Below, piece after piece: positions 9,511 to 47,161 of a stretch of DNA of 64,000 nucleotides; position 1 is the stretch's first letter, and every line of letters starts with the position of its first letter. Position numbers and translations under genes: made by a program. The notes beneath the pieces were generated by a model that saw only the letters and a program-made list of their open reading frames with translations, was not told where the DNA came from and made no database searches. Where the stretch lies: sequence record NC_071039.1, one strand, 5' to 3'.

Positions 9511-9539
9511 TTGACAAATAGATAACTGCATTATATAAT
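9511..9539 (+). promoter_or_regulatory. Consensus sigma70 promoter for SSB gene
   Basis: TTGACA(9511-9516)-17 bp-TATAAT(9534-9539) with an A-rich UP region. Confidence 0.9.
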
Positions 9540-9628: not shown

Positions 9629-10615
9629 ATGGCTTCTCTTGCTGAACTACGTCAAAAATTAAAAGATCAAGAAACAAAACGTGGCACAAAATCATCTGGC
9701 AGTGCAGATAAAAGTAATTTCCCATTCTGGGACATGAATGAAAACGACAGTGCTACTGTAAGATTTCTTCCTGATGCAAACACTGATAATACCTTTTTCT
9801 GGGTAGAAAAACAACAAATTAAAATTCCATTTAGTGGCATTGTAGGTATGAATAGTAAACCTACAGTTGTTACTGTACCGTGTGTAGAAATGTGGGGGGA
9901 ATCTTGCCCTATTCATCAAGAAATCCGTCCGTGGTTTAAAGATCCTTCGTTAGAGAAATTAGCGCGTACTTATTGGAAGAAACGTTCTTATATTTTCCAA
10001 GGACTTGTTCGTAAGTCGCCTCTGGTAGAACAAGAACTACCAGAGAATCCTATTCGCAAATTTACATTCGGAAGTCAGATTTTTAATCTAGTTAAATCGT
10101 CTCTATTAGACCCCGAAATGGAAAACATTCCCACTGATTATTTAAATGGCACTGATTTCCAGATAACTAAATTAATGAAGGGCCAATATGCTGATTACGC
10201 TACATCTAAATGGGCAAGGAAAGAATCTTCGTTAACTGAAGAAGAATTCCAGGCAATCCAAACATATGGTCTGTATGATTTAAGTAAATTTTTACCTGCT
10301 AAACCTGATGCAGAAGCATTAGCTGCTATATTCGAGATGTTCGAAGAATCGGTAGAAGGTAAAGAATATGATCCGCAGCGTTGGGGGAAATACTATCGCC
10401 CTTACGGGGTTGAAGTTCCTACTAATACTTCCGTAAGTGTACCTGTATCTAAACCAGAACCTAAGACTACAGTATCTAGTTCTTCAGTTATAGAAGATGA
10501 TAACGATGATCTTCCTTGGGAAGATACTACTAAACCTGTAGAGCCTGTCAAATCTGCTTCTAATGCGCAAGATATAATTGCGCTCATCCGCGCCCGCCAA
10601 AACAGCGGCAACTAA
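9629..10615 (+). CDS. Single-stranded DNA-binding protein (T4 gp32-like)
   Basis: VRFLPD..., VPC.EMWGE.CP, YWKKRSY, YADY..SKW motifs; acidic C-terminal tail. Confidence 0.92.
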   Translation: MASLAELRQKLKDQETKRGTKSSGSADKSNFPFWDMNENDSATVRFLPDANTDNTFFWVEKQQIKIPFSGIVGMNSKPTVVTVPCVEMWGESCPIHQEIRPWFKDPSLEKLARTYWKKRSYIFQGLVRKSPLVEQELPENPIRKFTFGSQIFNLVKSSLLDPEMENIPTDYLNGTDFQITKLMKGQYADYATSKWARKESSLTEEEFQAIQTYGLYDLSKFLPAKPDAEALAAIFEMFEESVEGKEYDPQRWGKYYRPYGVEVPTNTSVSVPVSKPEPKTTVSSSSVIEDDNDDLPWEDTTKPVEPVKSASNAQDIIALIRARQNSGN

Positions 10616-10618
10616 ATA

Positions 10619-10648
10619 GGGAGAGGGGATCGCTGATCCCCTCTCTTT
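10619..10648 (+). terminator. Intrinsic terminator
   Basis: GAGAGGGGATC-gct-GATCCCCTCTC-TTT. Confidence 0.8.
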
Positions 10649-10721
10649 AATATAACCTAAAATAGCCAAAAAGTACAACTACAATGTTGGAAGGACGGCA
10701 GTATTATAAAAAGGACATTTT

Positions 10722-10967
10722 ATGACAAAACCATTCGATATTTCTAAATTTAGAAAAGATATTACTAAAAGTATTACAGGCATTAGTACAGGATTTAATG
10801 ACCCAACTATTTGGATTAGTACCGGCAACTATACTCTTAATTATCTCATTAGTAGCGACTTTAATAAAGGCGTACCTATGGGTAAAGTAACTATGTTTGC
10901 CGGCGAGTCGGGTTGTTTGCCTGAAACTGCTAAAGTGAAAATTAGACTATCTAAGAAGCAATCTTAA
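10722..10967 (+). CDS. uvsX: UvsX/RecA N-extein (64 aa) fused to a 17-aa split-intein N fragment
   Basis: RecA-like ISTGN..LN..IS...GVP.GKVT.FAGESG, then intein block A CLPETAKVKIRL from 10914; TAA stop. Confidence 0.9.
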   Translation: MTKPFDISKFRKDITKSITGISTGFNDPTIWISTGNYTLNYLISSDFNKGVPMGKVTMFAGESGCLPETAKVKIRLSKKQS

Positions 10968-10976
10968 CTGTCCAGT

Positions 10977-11016
10977 GTCTCCGTCGAGGATAAATACTTT
11001 TATCTAAAACGGAGAC
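10977..11016 (+). promoter_or_regulatory. SD-sequestering hairpin with internal late promoter
   Basis: GTCTCCGT 10977-10984 / ACGGAGAC 11009-11016 covers GGAG; inner GATAAA/TTTATC stem; ATAAATA at 10990-10996. Confidence 0.8.
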
Positions 11017-11019
11017 TTT

Positions 11020-12453
11020 ATGGGAAATTACAATGTTCTTTCTACAAAAAACTTTAAGAAGCTATGTAATGAGTTAAACATAGTAACGATATCAGAAAAG
11101 TACATTTCTGATATACGTAAGATAGAAGATTCTGCTAAGAGCAAAGTGGATTCTGCATCTCAGCGTATGATATTAACTATGATAACTGTGAAAGTTCCCG
11201 ACTTATATGATGCATATAACAGATACTATCAGCTCAGAACAGATGGTATTAGTACAAAAACTCAAGACAGTATTTCTTATATTTTTGGAAAAGACTTCCT
11301 CGAATCTGTTAATTTACTAATCAGTAATAGATATAAAACTGCATTCCGTAAAGGAATGACAGTGGAAGAGGCATTTATAACACGTAATAAAGACTTTTCC
11401 AATAATGGTGTGTATTATAACCAGATGACTGATAAGCAAAAGAAACGTTTATCATTATTGCTTAGTGTGTATACACCAGAAAGGTTGGAGTTTTATAAAA
11501 AGACAATTTCGTTTTTTATTAAGTTAGATTTGACTAATTATGCAGGAAGAATGAAAAGACTGATGAAACTGGGATCTAGTACGTCTTTATATGCTAGCGT
11601 ATTACGGTATGGTAAATCTGTCGGAAAAAGCACACATTCATCTGTATCTGCGGTAAAGAGAAACTATTTGCCTACTTCGATACAATATTGGATGGCAAAG
11701 GGGTTTGATGAAGATACTGCATTAGTGAAGATAAACGAACATCAACAGAAAGCAAGTGCCATGTCTTCCAAAAAACTAAAAGGCACTAGCGAATACTCTG
11801 TTCGATCAGTTGCATATTGGATTAAAAACGGGTATAGCGAAGAAGAGGCAAAAGGGAAAGTATCTAATATACAGAATACTTGGAAAAATGTATCTCAAGA
11901 AGAGCGTGATCGAAGAATAGAATCGTGGATGACTACAATGAGTCTTAAAACAGACGAGGAGAAATCTTTGATAAACCTTAAAAAAACTCACAGCCCGGAA
12001 GGGATAATGGCAAGGACAAATTGCGATTATGATATTGCATTTAAGCAAAGCGTTGATTTTTTTAAGAAACGAAATAATTCTTCTAAAGTATCTCAAGAAC
12101 TATTTTGGGGAATTGCCGAGGATATCGATACCGATGGAGTTTACTTTTCTGAACTAAACTACGAATACCCTGTTATGGGGAAAATAGTAGATTTCTATGA
12201 TTCTAAAAGCAAAACAGTAATCGAATTTTATGGAAACTTTTGGCATGCAGATAGTACATATACTGATGACACACTGATATATGGAAAAACTGCTAAAGAA
12301 ATAAGAGAATCGGACATTTACAGAGAAACGTTAATTAGATCATCTGATTTGGTTAGTGATTTTATAGTAGTTTGGGAAAAGGACTTTAGGAAGAATCCGA
12401 AAGAAACAATTAAAAATTTAGTTAATATTTTAAATAATAAAAGGAAATTTTAA
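11020..12453 (+). mobile_element. Free-standing homing endonuclease (Vsr-like/EDxHD-type) between split-intein halves
   Basis: C-terminal VDFYD...VIEFYGNFWHAD...IVVWEKDF; repeated YW..KG..E..A modules; position inside recA. Confidence 0.8.
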
Positions 12454-12456
12454 TAA

Positions 12457-13728
12457 ATGGAATACATCGAAAAGGAAGTAACAGTTAGTGAACTGAAGTC
12501 TCTCTACAGTAGTAATGAATACGAAATTGAGTTAGACACACCAGATGGCTGGCAAAAACTGGGATCTTGGTTCGATAAAGGCCCTCTTAGTATGGTGACG
12601 GTAGAAACGCAGGATGGGTTAGTTACTAGATGTGCAGTAAACCATATGATCGAAGTGGTAGACGGATCGGAAACTTTTTGGACACTTGCAAAAGACTTGT
12701 ACGAAGGCCAACAAGTGCTTACTGTAAACGGTGTCTCAACAATTAGTTCTGTAACTGAAAGTGGCATCGAAGAATGTTTCGATTTCGAAATACTCCACGA
12801 AAATCATCGTTACTATGGTGATGGATTCTCTTCTCACAATAGTGGCAAATCGTATATAGTATCAGGAAACATTGTAAAAGATGCACAAGAAAAGGGAATT
12901 TTTGTTGTATTACTTGATTCAGAAAATGCACTCGACGAATCTTGGTTACATGCACTAGGTGTGGACACCGGACCGGAAAAAATGTTACGCATCTCTGTAT
13001 CGATGATAGATGATGTAGCAAAAATTATTAGTGATTTTGTTAAAGATTACAAGACTAATTATGCCGAACTACCTAACAATGATCGACCAAAGGTGCTTTT
13101 TGTTATTGACTCGCTCGGAATGTTATTGACACCAACGGAAACTGCACAATTTCAAAATGGTGATATGAAAGGAGATATGGGCAGGAAAGCAAAACAATTA
13201 AAAGCATTGATTTCTAACTGTACAAATATGTTCGGCAACTTAGACATAGGCCTTGTTTGTACTAACCATACATATGCATCTCAAGATTTATTTCAGCCTG
13301 ACGCTGTAATTTCGGGTGGCAGCGGCGCAGTCTATGCCGCGTCAATTGTAGTGGCAATGCAAAAGTTAAAGTTAAAAGAAGACGAAGCAGGTAATAAAAT
13401 TTCTGAAGTAGCTGGTATTCGTGCAGTATGCAAAGTTGTAAAATCTCGATATGCAAAGCCGTTTGAGACAGTAAAAGTAAATATTCCATATGATACAGGT
13501 ATGAGTCCAATATCAGGTCTATTTGACTTGTTTGAAAAAACAGGTAAACTTGTAAAACAAGGCAATAGATATAAGTACATAACCAAAGATGGTACCGAAA
13601 TGCTGTATTATAGGAAAGAATGGAATGATTACGATAAACTAAAAGTAATTATGAATGAATTTACAGACGAAGACCTAGGCAATGTCGTAGAAGTGGAAGA
13701 GGGTCATTTAGAAGAGTTCGATGAATAA
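12457..13728 (+). CDS. uvsX: 128-aa split-intein C fragment fused to UvsX/RecA C-extein (295 aa)
   Basis: Block B-like CAVNH, block F CFDFEI, terminal HN|S (Asn 12838-12840), then SGKS, DSENA, VIDSLG, NHTY, SGG RecA motifs. Confidence 0.92.
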   Translation: MEYIEKEVTVSELKSLYSSNEYEIELDTPDGWQKLGSWFDKGPLSMVTVETQDGLVTRCAVNHMIEVVDGSETFWTLAKDLYEGQQVLTVNGVSTISSVTESGIEECFDFEILHENHRYYGDGFSSHNSGKSYIVSGNIVKDAQEKGIFVVLLDSENALDESWLHALGVDTGPEKMLRISVSMIDDVAKIISDFVKDYKTNYAELPNNDRPKVLFVIDSLGMLLTPTETAQFQNGDMKGDMGRKAKQLKALISNCTNMFGNLDIGLVCTNHTYASQDLFQPDAVISGGSGAVYAASIVVAMQKLKLKEDEAGNKISEVAGIRAVCKVVKSRYAKPFETVKVNIPYDTGMSPISGLFDLFEKTGKLVKQGNRYKYITKDGTEMLYYRKEWNDYDKLKVIMNEFTDEDLGNVVEVEEGHLEEFDE

Positions 13729-15556
13729 ATTATGCGAAACAGATCGTATTAATATTATCAAATTACACTTCGATGATTTAAAATCTGTATCTGAATTAAA
13801 GCAAATATACGGAGTCTCTTATGATGTCATTAAAACCATCATAAGAGATGAAACGAATCGTCTACCGTTACAAGAAACTGATATAAAAATTTTGAAATTT
13901 AAAAAACTTGTTTCAAAGGAGTTGTTATTTGAATTACATGTAATTAAAAAACAATCATTTAATGAAATAAGAAAGACTTATAAGATTAATGAACTTCATT
14001 TAAAACAAGTGTTTAATGATTACGGAATACCAATTGAAAAGTGTTTATATACTGCTACTAACAAGAAGCGTAAAACAAAAAAGCCTGAAGATTTTACTAA
14101 AGACTTTTTCGAACACTTAGTATATAACGAAAGACGAACAATTAGTTGGATAAAAAATAATTATAACTTTAATTATGAAGAACTAAAACATCATTTAACA
14201 CATTTAAAAATCGATTATACTAATTCGTTGCCACCTGCTGTAAAACATCAACAAGATAAAATATCTAGAGAAACCCTAGCAGAAGAATTAAAAATTAAAT
14301 CTATTGTTGATATAATAAATGAATACGGAATTTCGAGAACTTATGTAGAAAGCGTTATAAAAGAATACAATATACAGTATTTTACAAAACCGAAACATTC
14401 TATATTAAGTGGTAAAGAATCAGAAATTTATCGGATGTATTATGATGAATGTATGACTACATACCAAATAGCAGAAAAATTGGGAGTATGTCAATACACC
14501 ATATGGAAAATAATGGCAGATAACGGATGGAAAACACGAGAACCGATTAAAAAAATTGATTTGATTTGGAATGATATAAAAGAAGAAGTTGTTAAATTAA
14601 TAGACAACGGTTATACATTAGCTGCTTTATGTGAAAAATACGAAATAACATCTATTACTGAAAAGTTAATAGAAGAAGGTATAAAATATACAAAGGGAAA
14701 TATTTCTTCTGGTCATGCAGAAATATCTGAATATGTGCGTTCATTGGGATTTAATGTAATCGACAATGATCGTACTATTATATTTCCGCGAGAAATTGAT
14801 ATTTTTATTCCCGAACTTAACATAGGAATAGAATACAACGGATTATATTTTCATAGCACACGAACAGAAGGAAATGTAACAAAGCATAGAGAAAAATATA
14901 GCATATGTAAACAAAAAGGTATTCGTTTAATACAAATTTTTGAAGATGAATTTATTCATAAGAAAGAACTAGTAAAGAGAAAATTAGCACACATTTTAGG
15001 AAAATCTAATAATAAATGCTATGCAAGAAATTGTATAGTTAAAGAAATAACGGTAGCAGATAAACGAAATTTCTTTAAAAAATATCACATACAAGAAGAT
15101 TCTGCATCCTCATATGCATATGGACTATATTATGATAACGAATTAGTTTGTGCTATGTCTTTTCTTAAAAAGAAGAAATGTACAGAATTAGTTAGATATG
15201 CATCTTCTATGCACGTGATAGGCGGATTTTCTAAGTTGTTGAAATATTGTATTAATAATAACAAAATAGATGTTATAAACACATATGCTGATCTCAGATG
15301 GTCGAATCCGACAAATAATGTATATGTAAACAATGGGTTTGATATACTGTATGAGACTGATTTTAATTACACTTATGTGAGTAAAGAGGATTTTTCAAAA
15401 AGGCTTAATAGGCAAAAATTTATGAAACACAAGTTGAAAAACATTTTATCAGATTTCGATAAATCATTAACAGAAGAAGAGAATATGAAAAATAATGGAT
15501 TTTATCGAGTATACGATGCTGGCCATTTAAAATTGCAATATAAGGTTAATAAATGA
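13721..15556 (+). mobile_element. Free-standing Hef-like homing endonuclease with multiple HTH modules
   Basis: HTH-like repeats (MTTYQIAEKLGVCQYTI); EIDIFIPELNIGIEYNGLYFHS nuclease; C-terminal ELVRYAS...GGFSKLL...YADLRWS...YDAG. Confidence 0.7.
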
Positions 15557-45741: not shown

Positions 45742-46968
45742 ATGTCGAAAGAAACATGCTCTTATTGCAATAAAGGCAAAGATGATGTGTCTAAGTTGTT
45801 TCGTAGCCCTGCTAAATATGGATCAAATGTATATATATGTGACCAGTGTGTAACTCAGTGCAACAATTTTTTAGAAACTGCCGAAACAAATGATCAGGAA
45901 TCTAATAAATTAGAAATAAAATACACACCTGAAGAATTAAAGGAATTGCTAGATAAAGACATTGTAGGGCAAGATCACGCAAAAGAATTACTAAGTCTAG
46001 CGGTGTATAATCATTATAAACGGGTAAACTATAACACCACTGAACATGATGTAGAGTTATCTAAATCTAATATAATGCTATTGGGACCCTCAGGTAGCGG
46101 TAAGACATTTTTAATATCTAGTATATCTAAATTGTTAAACATACCTTTTGTTTCTGTAGATTCTACTTCGCTAACAGAGGCAGGATATGTCGGCGATCAT
46201 GTAGAGACTATATTTACTAGATTAATTGCAGAAGCAAATGGTGACATAGAACTAGCACAACGTGGAATCGTGTTTATAGATGAAATAGATAAGAAGCGTT
46301 CTAAAAAAGGAACAAATTCTGCAGGATCTGATGTTTCCGGCGAGGGCGTTCAACAGTCTTTACTTCGGGTGTTAGAAGGAACAACGATTAAATTAGAACT
46401 AAATTCTAACAGTATGTTTAGTCCTAGACAGGAAATTATGTTTGACACAACTAACGTTTTGTTTATAGTTGGCGGCGCATTTATAGGACTAGATGCAGTA
46501 ATAAATAAAAGACTTAGTTCTACTAAATCTCAAATGGGATTTGGTTCCGAAGCCGGTAAACCCATAGAAGGTAGTTTATTCTATGTAGAACCGGAAGATT
46601 TGTATACATACGGTTTTATAAGAGAATTTGTAGGAAGATTTCCTGTTCTTATCGCGTTTCATGATGTAACAGAGACTATGCTTCGTCGAATTCTAGTAGA
46701 GCCTAAAAGTTCTATACTTAAACAATATCAAACTATGTTTAAATTAGATAACATTGAATTAGAATTCGATGAAGATTTTATAAAATCTGTTGCTACTACA
46801 GCGTTTAATAGGAAAACAGGCGCTCGTGGTTTAAGAACTATTTTAGAAAAAGAACTATCTAGTATAGCATATAGATTGCCTTCTATAAGACGAGAAGGGT
46901 TTAGCAAGATTATTATACACGAACTAGGAAAACATAATTTCATAAAAGGGCAAAATGAAGACATTTAA
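45742..46968 (+). CDS. clpX: ClpX ATPase
   Basis: C4 Zn finger, GPSGSGKT, GYVG pore loop, DEIDK, DVSGEGVQQ, MGF loop, TGARGLR. Confidence 0.93.
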   Translation: MSKETCSYCNKGKDDVSKLFRSPAKYGSNVYICDQCVTQCNNFLETAETNDQESNKLEIKYTPEELKELLDKDIVGQDHAKELLSLAVYNHYKRVNYNTTEHDVELSKSNIMLLGPSGSGKTFLISSISKLLNIPFVSVDSTSLTEAGYVGDHVETIFTRLIAEANGDIELAQRGIVFIDEIDKKRSKKGTNSAGSDVSGEGVQQSLLRVLEGTTIKLELNSNSMFSPRQEIMFDTTNVLFIVGGAFIGLDAVINKRLSSTKSQMGFGSEAGKPIEGSLFYVEPEDLYTYGFIREFVGRFPVLIAFHDVTETMLRRILVEPKSSILKQYQTMFKLDNIELEFDEDFIKSVATTAFNRKTGARGLRTILEKELSSIAYRLPSIRREGFSKIIIHELGKHNFIKGQNEDI

Positions 46969-47161
46969 TATAATTAGTGGTCTTACTGTAGAAGTAAGAC
47001 ACGATAACTTTAACCAAGCACTTAGAACTTTTACTAAAAAGGTTCAAAATTCAGGAAAATTAAAAGAAGTTAGAGAACGCGAATTCTATGAAAAGCCTTC
47101 TGTAAAAAAGACAAAAGCTAAAAAAGCAGCAATTCAACGCCAGAAAAAGAAAAAAATATAA
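46955..47161 (+). CDS. rpsU: Ribosomal protein bS21 homologue
   Basis: ALR.F.KKV...G.L.E.R.REFYEKPS, basic tail. Confidence 0.88.
   Translation: MKTFNIISGLTVEVRHDNFNQALRTFTKKVQNSGKLKEVREREFYEKPSVKKTKAKKAAIQRQKKKKI

Follow-up and report, generated by a model that had tools for sequence, protein, structure and literature searches.

What controls a mobile endonuclease gene whose ribosome-binding site (RBS) is buried in RNA structure? The question is raised by the fractured uvsX gene of the Pseudomonas jumbo phage vB_PaeM_PA5oct (NC_071039.1 / MK797984.1), in which gp275, the gene of a Vsr-like homing endonuclease, stands between two gene halves and is preceded by a strong hairpin. The locus lies in a window of 64,000 nucleotides (nt), the whole stretch of DNA analysed here, whose position 1 is genome position 124001. 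Coordinates are those of the window, and features lie on its plus strand, unless stated otherwise; genome-wide counts cover the entire 286,783-bp PA5oct genome, joined from annotated stretches. Sequence statistics and comparative data make it probable that the hairpin is a translational lock on gp275, unlocked by a late promoter.

The entire regulatory hairpin occupies positions 10971-11024. Its core is a GC-rich stem of 8 bp in which GTCTCCGT (10977-10984) pairs without mismatch with ACGGAGAC (11009-11016), and the GGAG Shine-Dalgarno (SD) sequence of gp275 (11011-11014), located 5 nt before the ATG at 11020, falls within the 3′ arm. This SD-burying pairing had been proposed in a first-pass annotation of the sequence, and all its coordinates proved exact. 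The second stem that this annotation placed inside the first is also present, with 7 bp (one of them G-U) rather than 6, between GGAUAAA (10988-10994) and UUUAUCU (10999-11005). In the minimum free energy (MFE) fold, an outer extension is added between UCCA (10971-10974) and UGGG (11021-11024); it takes in the UG of the start codon, which is therefore partly paired. The MFE of the 81 nt from 10960 to 11040 is -22.8 kcal/mol, compared with -12.4 +/- 2.6 kcal/mol for dinucleotide shuffles (z = -4.0), none of the 200 shuffles folds as well, and the hairpin is retained in contexts of 200 and 400 nt.

The accessibility of the SD depends strongly on where the RNA begins. In read-through RNAs the unpaired probability of GGAG is 0.000 and opening of the segment 11006-11024 costs 16.9 kcal/mol, while in RNAs starting at 11001-11004 the unpaired probability reaches ∼0.45 for GGAG and 0.63 for the whole 3′ arm. 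A candidate origin for such shortened RNAs lies in the hairpin itself. The word ATAAATA, correctly located between the arms at 10990-10996 by the first-pass annotation, is preceded by G10989 and thus forms the box GATAAATA (10989-10996), which is shared between the inner stem and the loop and is the predicted core of PA5oct late promoters, that is, a gp55-type -10 element. Since the box sits in the loop, between the arms, a late transcript starting from it would lack the 5′ arm. In T4 late promoters, transcription starts some 6-7 nt after the box.

The proposed mechanism combines these elements around gp275, a mobile gene in a fractured host gene. Read-through transcripts from the gp32/uvsX-N unit would hold both arms, and the 8-bp stem with its extensions would pair GGAG and part of the AUG, so that ribosomes could not start on gp275. 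The uvsX/intein halves would still be made from this locked RNA, because each has its own RBS, and would be able to trans-splice. Later in infection, host RNA polymerase with the phage sigma factor gp346 would start ∼6-7 nt past GATAAATA, near 11002-11004 if the spacing is T4-like, and the resulting RNA, devoid of the 5′ arms of both stems, would expose the SD and allow the endonuclease to be translated. This supports the reading of the first-pass annotation, in which early read-through mRNA would yield both intein halves but no nuclease.

A sigma factor suited to this role is encoded by the phage. The protein gp346, annotated as ‘sigma factor for late transcription’, matches the ‘late sigma transcription factor’ families phrog_234 (E = 1e-17), which is of the T4 gp55 type, and phrog_12791 (E = 8e-82), and its gene adjoins genes annotated as an SbcD-like endonuclease subunit and a recombination endonuclease subunit. 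PA5oct depends on the host RNA polymerase, and the published analysis describes sigma-70-like promoters only (TATAATA/TTGAC; PMC7318152). Plain counts do not argue for a T4 late promoter, an argument that was rejected since both ATAAATA (43 copies, 63.7 expected) and TATAAATA (12 copies, 20.9 expected) stay below shuffle expectation in the window. The motif stands out only once its position and the G before it are taken into account. In a 7-mer scan of the 62 nt upstream of 449 genes called as open reading frames (ORFs), ATAAATA occurs 35 times for 6.3 expected and GATAAAT 25 times for 5.0 expected, both being among the most enriched words.

The position bias is carried by the G-first form. 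Genome-wide, 24 of the 32 copies of GATAAATA are fully non-coding in a genome of which 12% is non-coding (binomial p = 4e-16), and 20 of the 32 lie 10-60 nt upstream of a start codon on the same strand. By comparison, TATAAATA has 38 copies, of which 7 are non-coding and 1 is upstream of a gene; the difference between GATAAATA and the other three NATAAATA words is highly significant (Fisher p = 1.6e-11). In the window the box occurs at 2656, 10989, 24365, 30278, 30723 and 32306. It mostly stands 16-53 nt before structural genes, and the genes that follow it encode mostly virion proteins detected by mass spectrometry (MS), including the tail sheath gp289, the tail tube gp287, the baseplate hub gp336 and the tail fibre gp324, with gp250, gp247, gp189, gp185, gp179, gp136 and gp135 as further members. 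At the hairpin, the extended form GATAAATAC is found 23 nt before the gp275 ATG, within the usual spacing, and all 7 genome copies of this form are non-coding and upstream of genes. These genome-wide sequence statistics are the reason why GATAAATA is taken as the probable core of PA5oct late promoters. The first-pass annotation had also placed a late promoter in the loop; the motif and a gp55-type sigma factor are indeed there, the relevant consensus being GATAAATA and not the T4 form TATAAATA. Separately, GATAAATA occurs 16 nt before the start of an HNH endonuclease gene on the minus strand (genome 241663-242289, in stretch L005, outside the window), so that a second mobile nuclease may be expressed late.

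Comparative evidence comes from related loci. Twenty-four loci were fetched from metagenomes and IMG/VR contigs, giving 19 distinct intergenic sequences with that of PA5oct included (18 further), in which the gp275 homologues are 29-42% identical. The common layout comprises a uvsX-N ORF of 77-85 amino acids, the endonuclease, and a RecA_N-containing ORF of 422-434 amino acids. The spacer before the endonuclease measures 34-78 nt. In most loci its fold places the SD or the AUG within the 3′ arm, and in many the 5′ arm starts a few nt past the uvsX-N stop. The arm sequences differ between loci while their complementarity is kept, as illustrated by the pairs CCAGTCTCTCCTGCTA / TAGCAGGAGAGACTGG in L013, where pairing lies directly before the ATG, CCGCATTCTCC / GGAGAATGCGG in L024, GATTCTCCTGAAA / TTTCAGGAGAATC in L026, ACCCCTTATAAT / ATTATAGGGGT in L021 and CCCTGTTTCA / TGAAACAGGG in L022. 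To measure co-variation, the stretch preceding the motif was paired with the stretch that runs from motif+6 to ATG+17, and duplex energies were compared between cognate and non-cognate combinations. Over the 19 loci, cognate arms pair with -17.2 kcal/mol versus -10.2 kcal/mol for non-cognate arms, and no permutation out of 20,000 attains the cognate average (p = 5e-5). RNAalifold, applied to a MAFFT alignment of these 19 spacers, predicts no pairs, as the 3′ arms cannot be aligned on their sequence.

No other part of the spacer is as well conserved in that same alignment as the motif. It stands between the arms in 17 of the 19 loci, as ATAAATA in 14 and GCTAAATA in 3; more finely, GATAAATA is found in 5 loci (PA5oct among them), TATAAATA in 8, AATAAATA in 1 and GCTAAATA in 3, the last 2 being degenerate. 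The distance from motif to start is 8-30 nt, and 16-30 nt in all loci except L023. In the wider endonuclease family, located in other host genes, NATAAATA or GCTAAATA occurs 15-40 nt before the start in 16 of 54 distinct loci, several of which have SD-sequestering arms.

Locking is also found at other PA5oct genes. Upstream segments pair with the RBS of the tail sheath gene gp289 (genome 118615), the tail tube gene gp287 (genome 123070; both sites are 1-5 kb ahead of the window), gp247 (genome 156306, window 32306) and gp282 (genome 126656, window 2656). At the tail sheath and tail tube genes the box itself is within an inner hairpin (GATAAA..TTTATC at the tail tube). Averaged over 23 late-promoter sites, cognate segments pair with -7.9 kcal/mol and non-cognate ones with -6.7 kcal/mol (p = 0.014); pairing is strongest at gp275 (-18.0 kcal/mol, z = -4.3). 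Because other late promoters have RBS-pairing arms, the lock is not restricted to the mobile element. No comparable hairpin was found at the other endonuclease genes gp288, gp328, gp273, gp172, gp145 and gp144; upstream of gp288 and gp328 there are sigma-70-like elements of the TTGAC type instead.

Transcription of the locus has been followed through four RNA-seq runs available as Logan contigs, which carry no strand, ends or time; depths are from the deepest run. Word depth is 1384 in uvsX-N, 1110 in the contig that bridges the hairpin (10901-11328), 826-861 in the endonuclease gene and 975-1150 in uvsX-C. With a bridging contig and a depth similar to that of the uvsX halves, the endonuclease gene would be co-transcribed, and any control post-transcriptional. 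The contigs fit co-transcription across the hairpin and are compatible both with a late start and with its absence.

Several observations weigh against a late-unlocked switch. No rise in depth is seen past the loop, so that a strong internal promoter is not evident in these undirected contigs. Lood et al. 2020 found few regions separating middle from late transcription, and promoters of the sigma-70-like kind only (PMC7318152). Arms are weak or unclear in 3 of the 19 loci (L015, L016 and L023). Within the genus, the region 10940-11060 is 100% identical across all 11 sequenced PA5oct-like phages and hence offers no co-variation. Finally, gp275 is not among the MS-detected proteins, although these are virion data and uninformative either way.

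The absence of a depth rise would suit a simpler device, a constitutive attenuator in which the hairpin keeps the endonuclease low at all times, thereby limiting toxicity, while GATAAATA is a relic or just a part of the inner stem. The motif does double as the 5′ half of that stem, and the opening cost of the hairpin is enough for repression on its own. Such a device leaves no reason for the motif to be the best-conserved intergenic block, present in nearly all loci, where arms and loops have diverged, nor for it to switch between GATAAATA, TATAAATA and GCTAAATA with its distance to the start kept. It would also leave as coincidence that the PA5oct loop motif is the genome's own gene-upstream motif at its usual spacing. 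Permanent attenuation is for these reasons rather unlikely, though it is the best placed of the alternatives.

The proximity of the 5′ arm to the uvsX-N stop codon (10965-10967) suggests another scheme, translational coupling, in which the ribosome that ends on uvsX-N melts the stem and ties endonuclease synthesis to that of the N fragment. In PA5oct the arm begins 3-9 nt past the stop, inside the footprint of a terminating ribosome, and the same is true in many relatives. The inner stem and 3-4 outer pairs would nevertheless stay closed, the arm of L009 is ∼27 nt from the stop, and the conserved promoter-like loop motif is left unexplained. As a replacement for the late switch, coupling has a small probability; as an added layer, it could possibly act alongside it.

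A GC-rich stem placed right after a stop codon, together with the modest fall in depth from 1384 to 1110 and then ∼840, could also point to an intrinsic terminator, an RNA-processing site or an RNA-stability element parting uvsX-N from the endonuclease gene. What comes after the stem is CUUUAUGGG and not a U tract, the terminator scan does not retrieve this stem, and a contig bridges it. Among relatives, it is the SD or the AUG, not a U tract, that the 3′ arm follows. With no U tract and with a contig running across the stem, a terminator is excluded, and this whole group of explanations is very improbable. A chance palindrome, favoured solely by the AT-rich context of the intergenic DNA, is hardly credible in view of the shuffle statistics and of a conserved layout with co-varying arms. 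The late-unlocked translational lock is thereby retained as the probable explanation.

The protein products on each side of the hairpin explain what is being interrupted. Upstream, gp276 (10722-10967) encodes the UvsX N-extein (amino acids 1-64), ending with ...FAGESG, the first half of Walker A, followed by a 17-amino-acid N-intein fragment, CLPETAKVKIRLSKKQS (10914-10964). Downstream, gp274 (12457-13728) encodes a 128-amino-acid C-intein fragment (12457-12840, ending with ...SSHN), followed by the UvsX C-extein from Ser129 (SGKSY...). The two proteins match consecutive parts of the UvsX family phrog_97, gp276 at profile positions 14-84 (E = 3e-13) and gp274 at positions 83-445 (E = 2e-46), the latter with a Pfam RecA match as well (E = 2e-10), and Walker A reads GESG|SGKS over the junction. 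The intein junctions are ...GESG|CLPET..., with Cys1, and ...SSHN|SGKS, with the terminal HN followed by Ser. Residues 5-131 of gp274 align to VidaL (PDB 6VGV, E = 5e-37), including ...NHRYYGDG..SH and SGK. With phrog_97 halves and a VidaL match at the break, uvsX is, as read from its sequence, interrupted at the P-loop by a VidaL-type intein with an atypical split (17-amino-acid N and 128-amino-acid C parts). The first-pass annotation was right in seeing an endonuclease between intein halves of a recA-like gene, and right about the halves themselves; what it had not caught is the atypical split with its very short N fragment. As gp274 has its own SD, AAGGA (12442-12446), it is independent of gp275 translation.

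The endonuclease itself, gp275 (11020-12453), is a free-standing protein of 477 amino acids for which Pfam, PHROG models and a PDB profile search give no family match. It is Vsr-like on the basis of tblastn, source names and fold search. Residues 310-468 match a ‘putative VSR endonuclease’ of Aeromonas T4-like phages (tblastn, E = 2e-8), and metagenomic homologues carry the source name very-short-patch-repair endonuclease. The AlphaFold model (mean pLDDT 78.7, above 85 over most of 361-477) displays a C-terminal alpha/beta domain that Foldseek relates to E. coli Vsr (1cw0, probability 0.91; 1vsr, 0.82; target TM-score 0.50-0.52). The nuclease domain covers residues ∼350-477, with conserved D391, E402, H409 and D432. 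In public records both gp276 and gp275 are named ‘hypothetical protein’.

Further upstream, a sigma-70 consensus promoter, TTGACA-17-TATAAT with 12 of 12 matches (9511-9539), precedes a gp32-like gene and is the likely source of early/middle transcripts reading towards uvsX. A GC-rich hairpin after the stop of this gene (10620-10646) is likely a partial terminator; RNA word depth drops ∼10-fold at ∼10520-10540, just before it. The gp32-like gene (Pfam gp32, E = 2e-9), a single-stranded DNA-binding protein gene annotated ‘structural protein’, has a word depth of ∼10,000-15,000, about 10-fold above that of uvsX. On the other side, a second mobile gene (13721-15556), for a 611-amino-acid Hef-like endonuclease (PHROG 3339, E = 1e-94), shares 8 nt with the end of uvsX-C and has neither hairpin nor late motif. 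Elsewhere in PA5oct, outside the window, the DNA polymerase gene is likewise divided, its pieces gp173 and gp171 flanking the Hef-like endonuclease gene gp172 (genome 216595-221821, L004:28595-33821). The window also contains an annotated gene for a phage-encoded ribosomal protein S21 (46955-47161), and an S21-like gene is likewise found near the fractured uvsX of the metagenomic locus L012.

Variation among close relatives is limited. Over the surrounding 6 kb, identity is 100% to PA5oct, and 99.2-100% for 10 other records, one of which is a second PA5oct accession. The gp275 protein is 100% identical in all but 2 of 11 public records, those of Ettore and PAC2 (99.8%). RNA run X4 contains a variant phage with 26 differences, 25 of them listed, over the 5.2 kb from 9810 to 15000; none of the listed differences falls in 10902-11691, a segment that holds the hairpin and the first 670 nt of the endonuclease gene.

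Switches of this kind have known precedents. For T4 I-TevI, experiments have established a hairpin that is locked early and open late, and such hairpins are also reported for I-TevII, I-TevIII, segB and Aeh1 mobE (PMC2988022), which agrees with the T-even precedent invoked by the first-pass annotation. In I-TevI, I-TevII, I-TevIII and segB the late promoter is located within the RBS-sequestering hairpin or immediately ahead of it; for I-TevI the review cites Gott et al. 1988 and Gibb & Edgell 2010. PA5oct resembles the I-TevI case, located in the td intron, in that the endonuclease gene would belong to a unit transcribed earlier, read-through RNA has its SD hidden in a stable stem, and a gp55-type late promoter is predicted where late RNA would lose the inhibitory arm. 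It differs in its host element, a split intein in uvsX instead of a group I intron, which means that a need to spare intron splicing cannot account for the lock here. Its endonuclease resembles Vsr instead of the GIY-YIG or HNH enzymes, its promoter core is GATAAATA, and the promoter region has no operator-like similarity to the homing site. The best local alignment between the extein junction and 10960-11030 scores 12, against a shuffle mean of 13.7, and 89% of shuffles score as high; an autorepression operator like that of I-TevI, which would resemble the uninterrupted target site, is not supported.

Closer in genetic context is Aeh1 mobE, in the split nrdA gene, where a hairpin with the late element TATAAATA sequesters the RBS (Gibb & Edgell 2007, 2009, as cited in PMC2988022 and PMC2677866). 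Both cases involve a free-standing endonuclease that fractures an essential gene and whose RBS is sequestered by a late-promoter hairpin, but mobE is of the HNH family, the nrdA halves reassemble without an intein, and phage lineage and host are different. The fractured genes of Dassa et al. 2009, which combine split inteins with free-standing Vsr-like endonucleases, show hairpins in 15 of 16 endonuclease 5′ untranslated regions, 10 of which have TATAAATA, two conserved motifs pairing in the stem, and one atypically split intein (terminase, C part of 122 amino acids) (PMC2677866). Gene layout and endonuclease family are those found here, whereas uvsX is not among the fractured hosts of that study, and its material consisted of marine metagenome fragments rather than a cultured Pseudomonas jumbo phage (PMC2677866). 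The promoter variant of PA5oct is GATAAATA. RBS-sequestering structures also occur on early transcripts of T4 e (lysozyme), soc, 25, 26 and 39 (PMC2988022). These share the early-locked, late-open design, which in PA5oct would also apply to the true late genes gp289 and gp287; they are structural or lysis genes and not mobile elements.

The intein has its own point of reference in VidaL (PDB 6VGV/6VGW), to which the intein part of gp274 is closely homologous; the N fragment in PA5oct is ultra-short, at 17 amino acids. The likeness concerns protein splicing and not the hairpin, and in PA5oct the intein occurs as a natural allele of a cultured phage, with predicted splicing. VidaL itself is atypically split and in wide use as a protein-engineering tool. 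In many relatives located in other host genes (L033-L096), the endonuclease is followed by an ORF that matches only residues ∼20-130 of gp274, the intein part, a pattern suggesting joint movement of the long-C-fragment split intein and this endonuclease family. A broader proposal, to be held tentatively, is that the regulatory module travels in a cassette with the Vsr-like family, its -10 box being retuned to the sigma factor of each phage, and that PA5oct, with a G-first late consensus unlike that of T4, has extended the locking to its tail sheath and tail tube genes. The distribution of variants bears on such retuning: PA5oct-like phages and some others have GATAAATA, a second set has TATAAATA and a third GCTAAATA. 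If this were true, the loop motif would report the late-promoter specificity of uncultured phages.

The hairpin with its embedded motif is real and conserved, and the probable switch that it forms belongs to a class known from T4-like phages and from fractured genes in metagenomes; it brings no new regulatory principle. What is added is the case of a cultured Pseudomonas jumbo phage, its predicted GATAAATA late consensus, and a large set of fractured uvsX genes with co-varying arms. Three annotations of the ‘hypothetical/structural’ type are corrected at the same time. The late consensus is testable in PA5oct, where the published transcriptome gave only sigma-70-like promoters. The combination of a uvsX gene fractured by a Vsr-like endonuclease, predicted to be rejoined by a VidaL-type ultra-short split intein and equipped with a hairpin/late-promoter switch had so far come mainly from metagenomic fragments; PA5oct, a therapy-candidate jumbo phage whose host is P. 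aeruginosa, provides a culturable and genetically accessible example.

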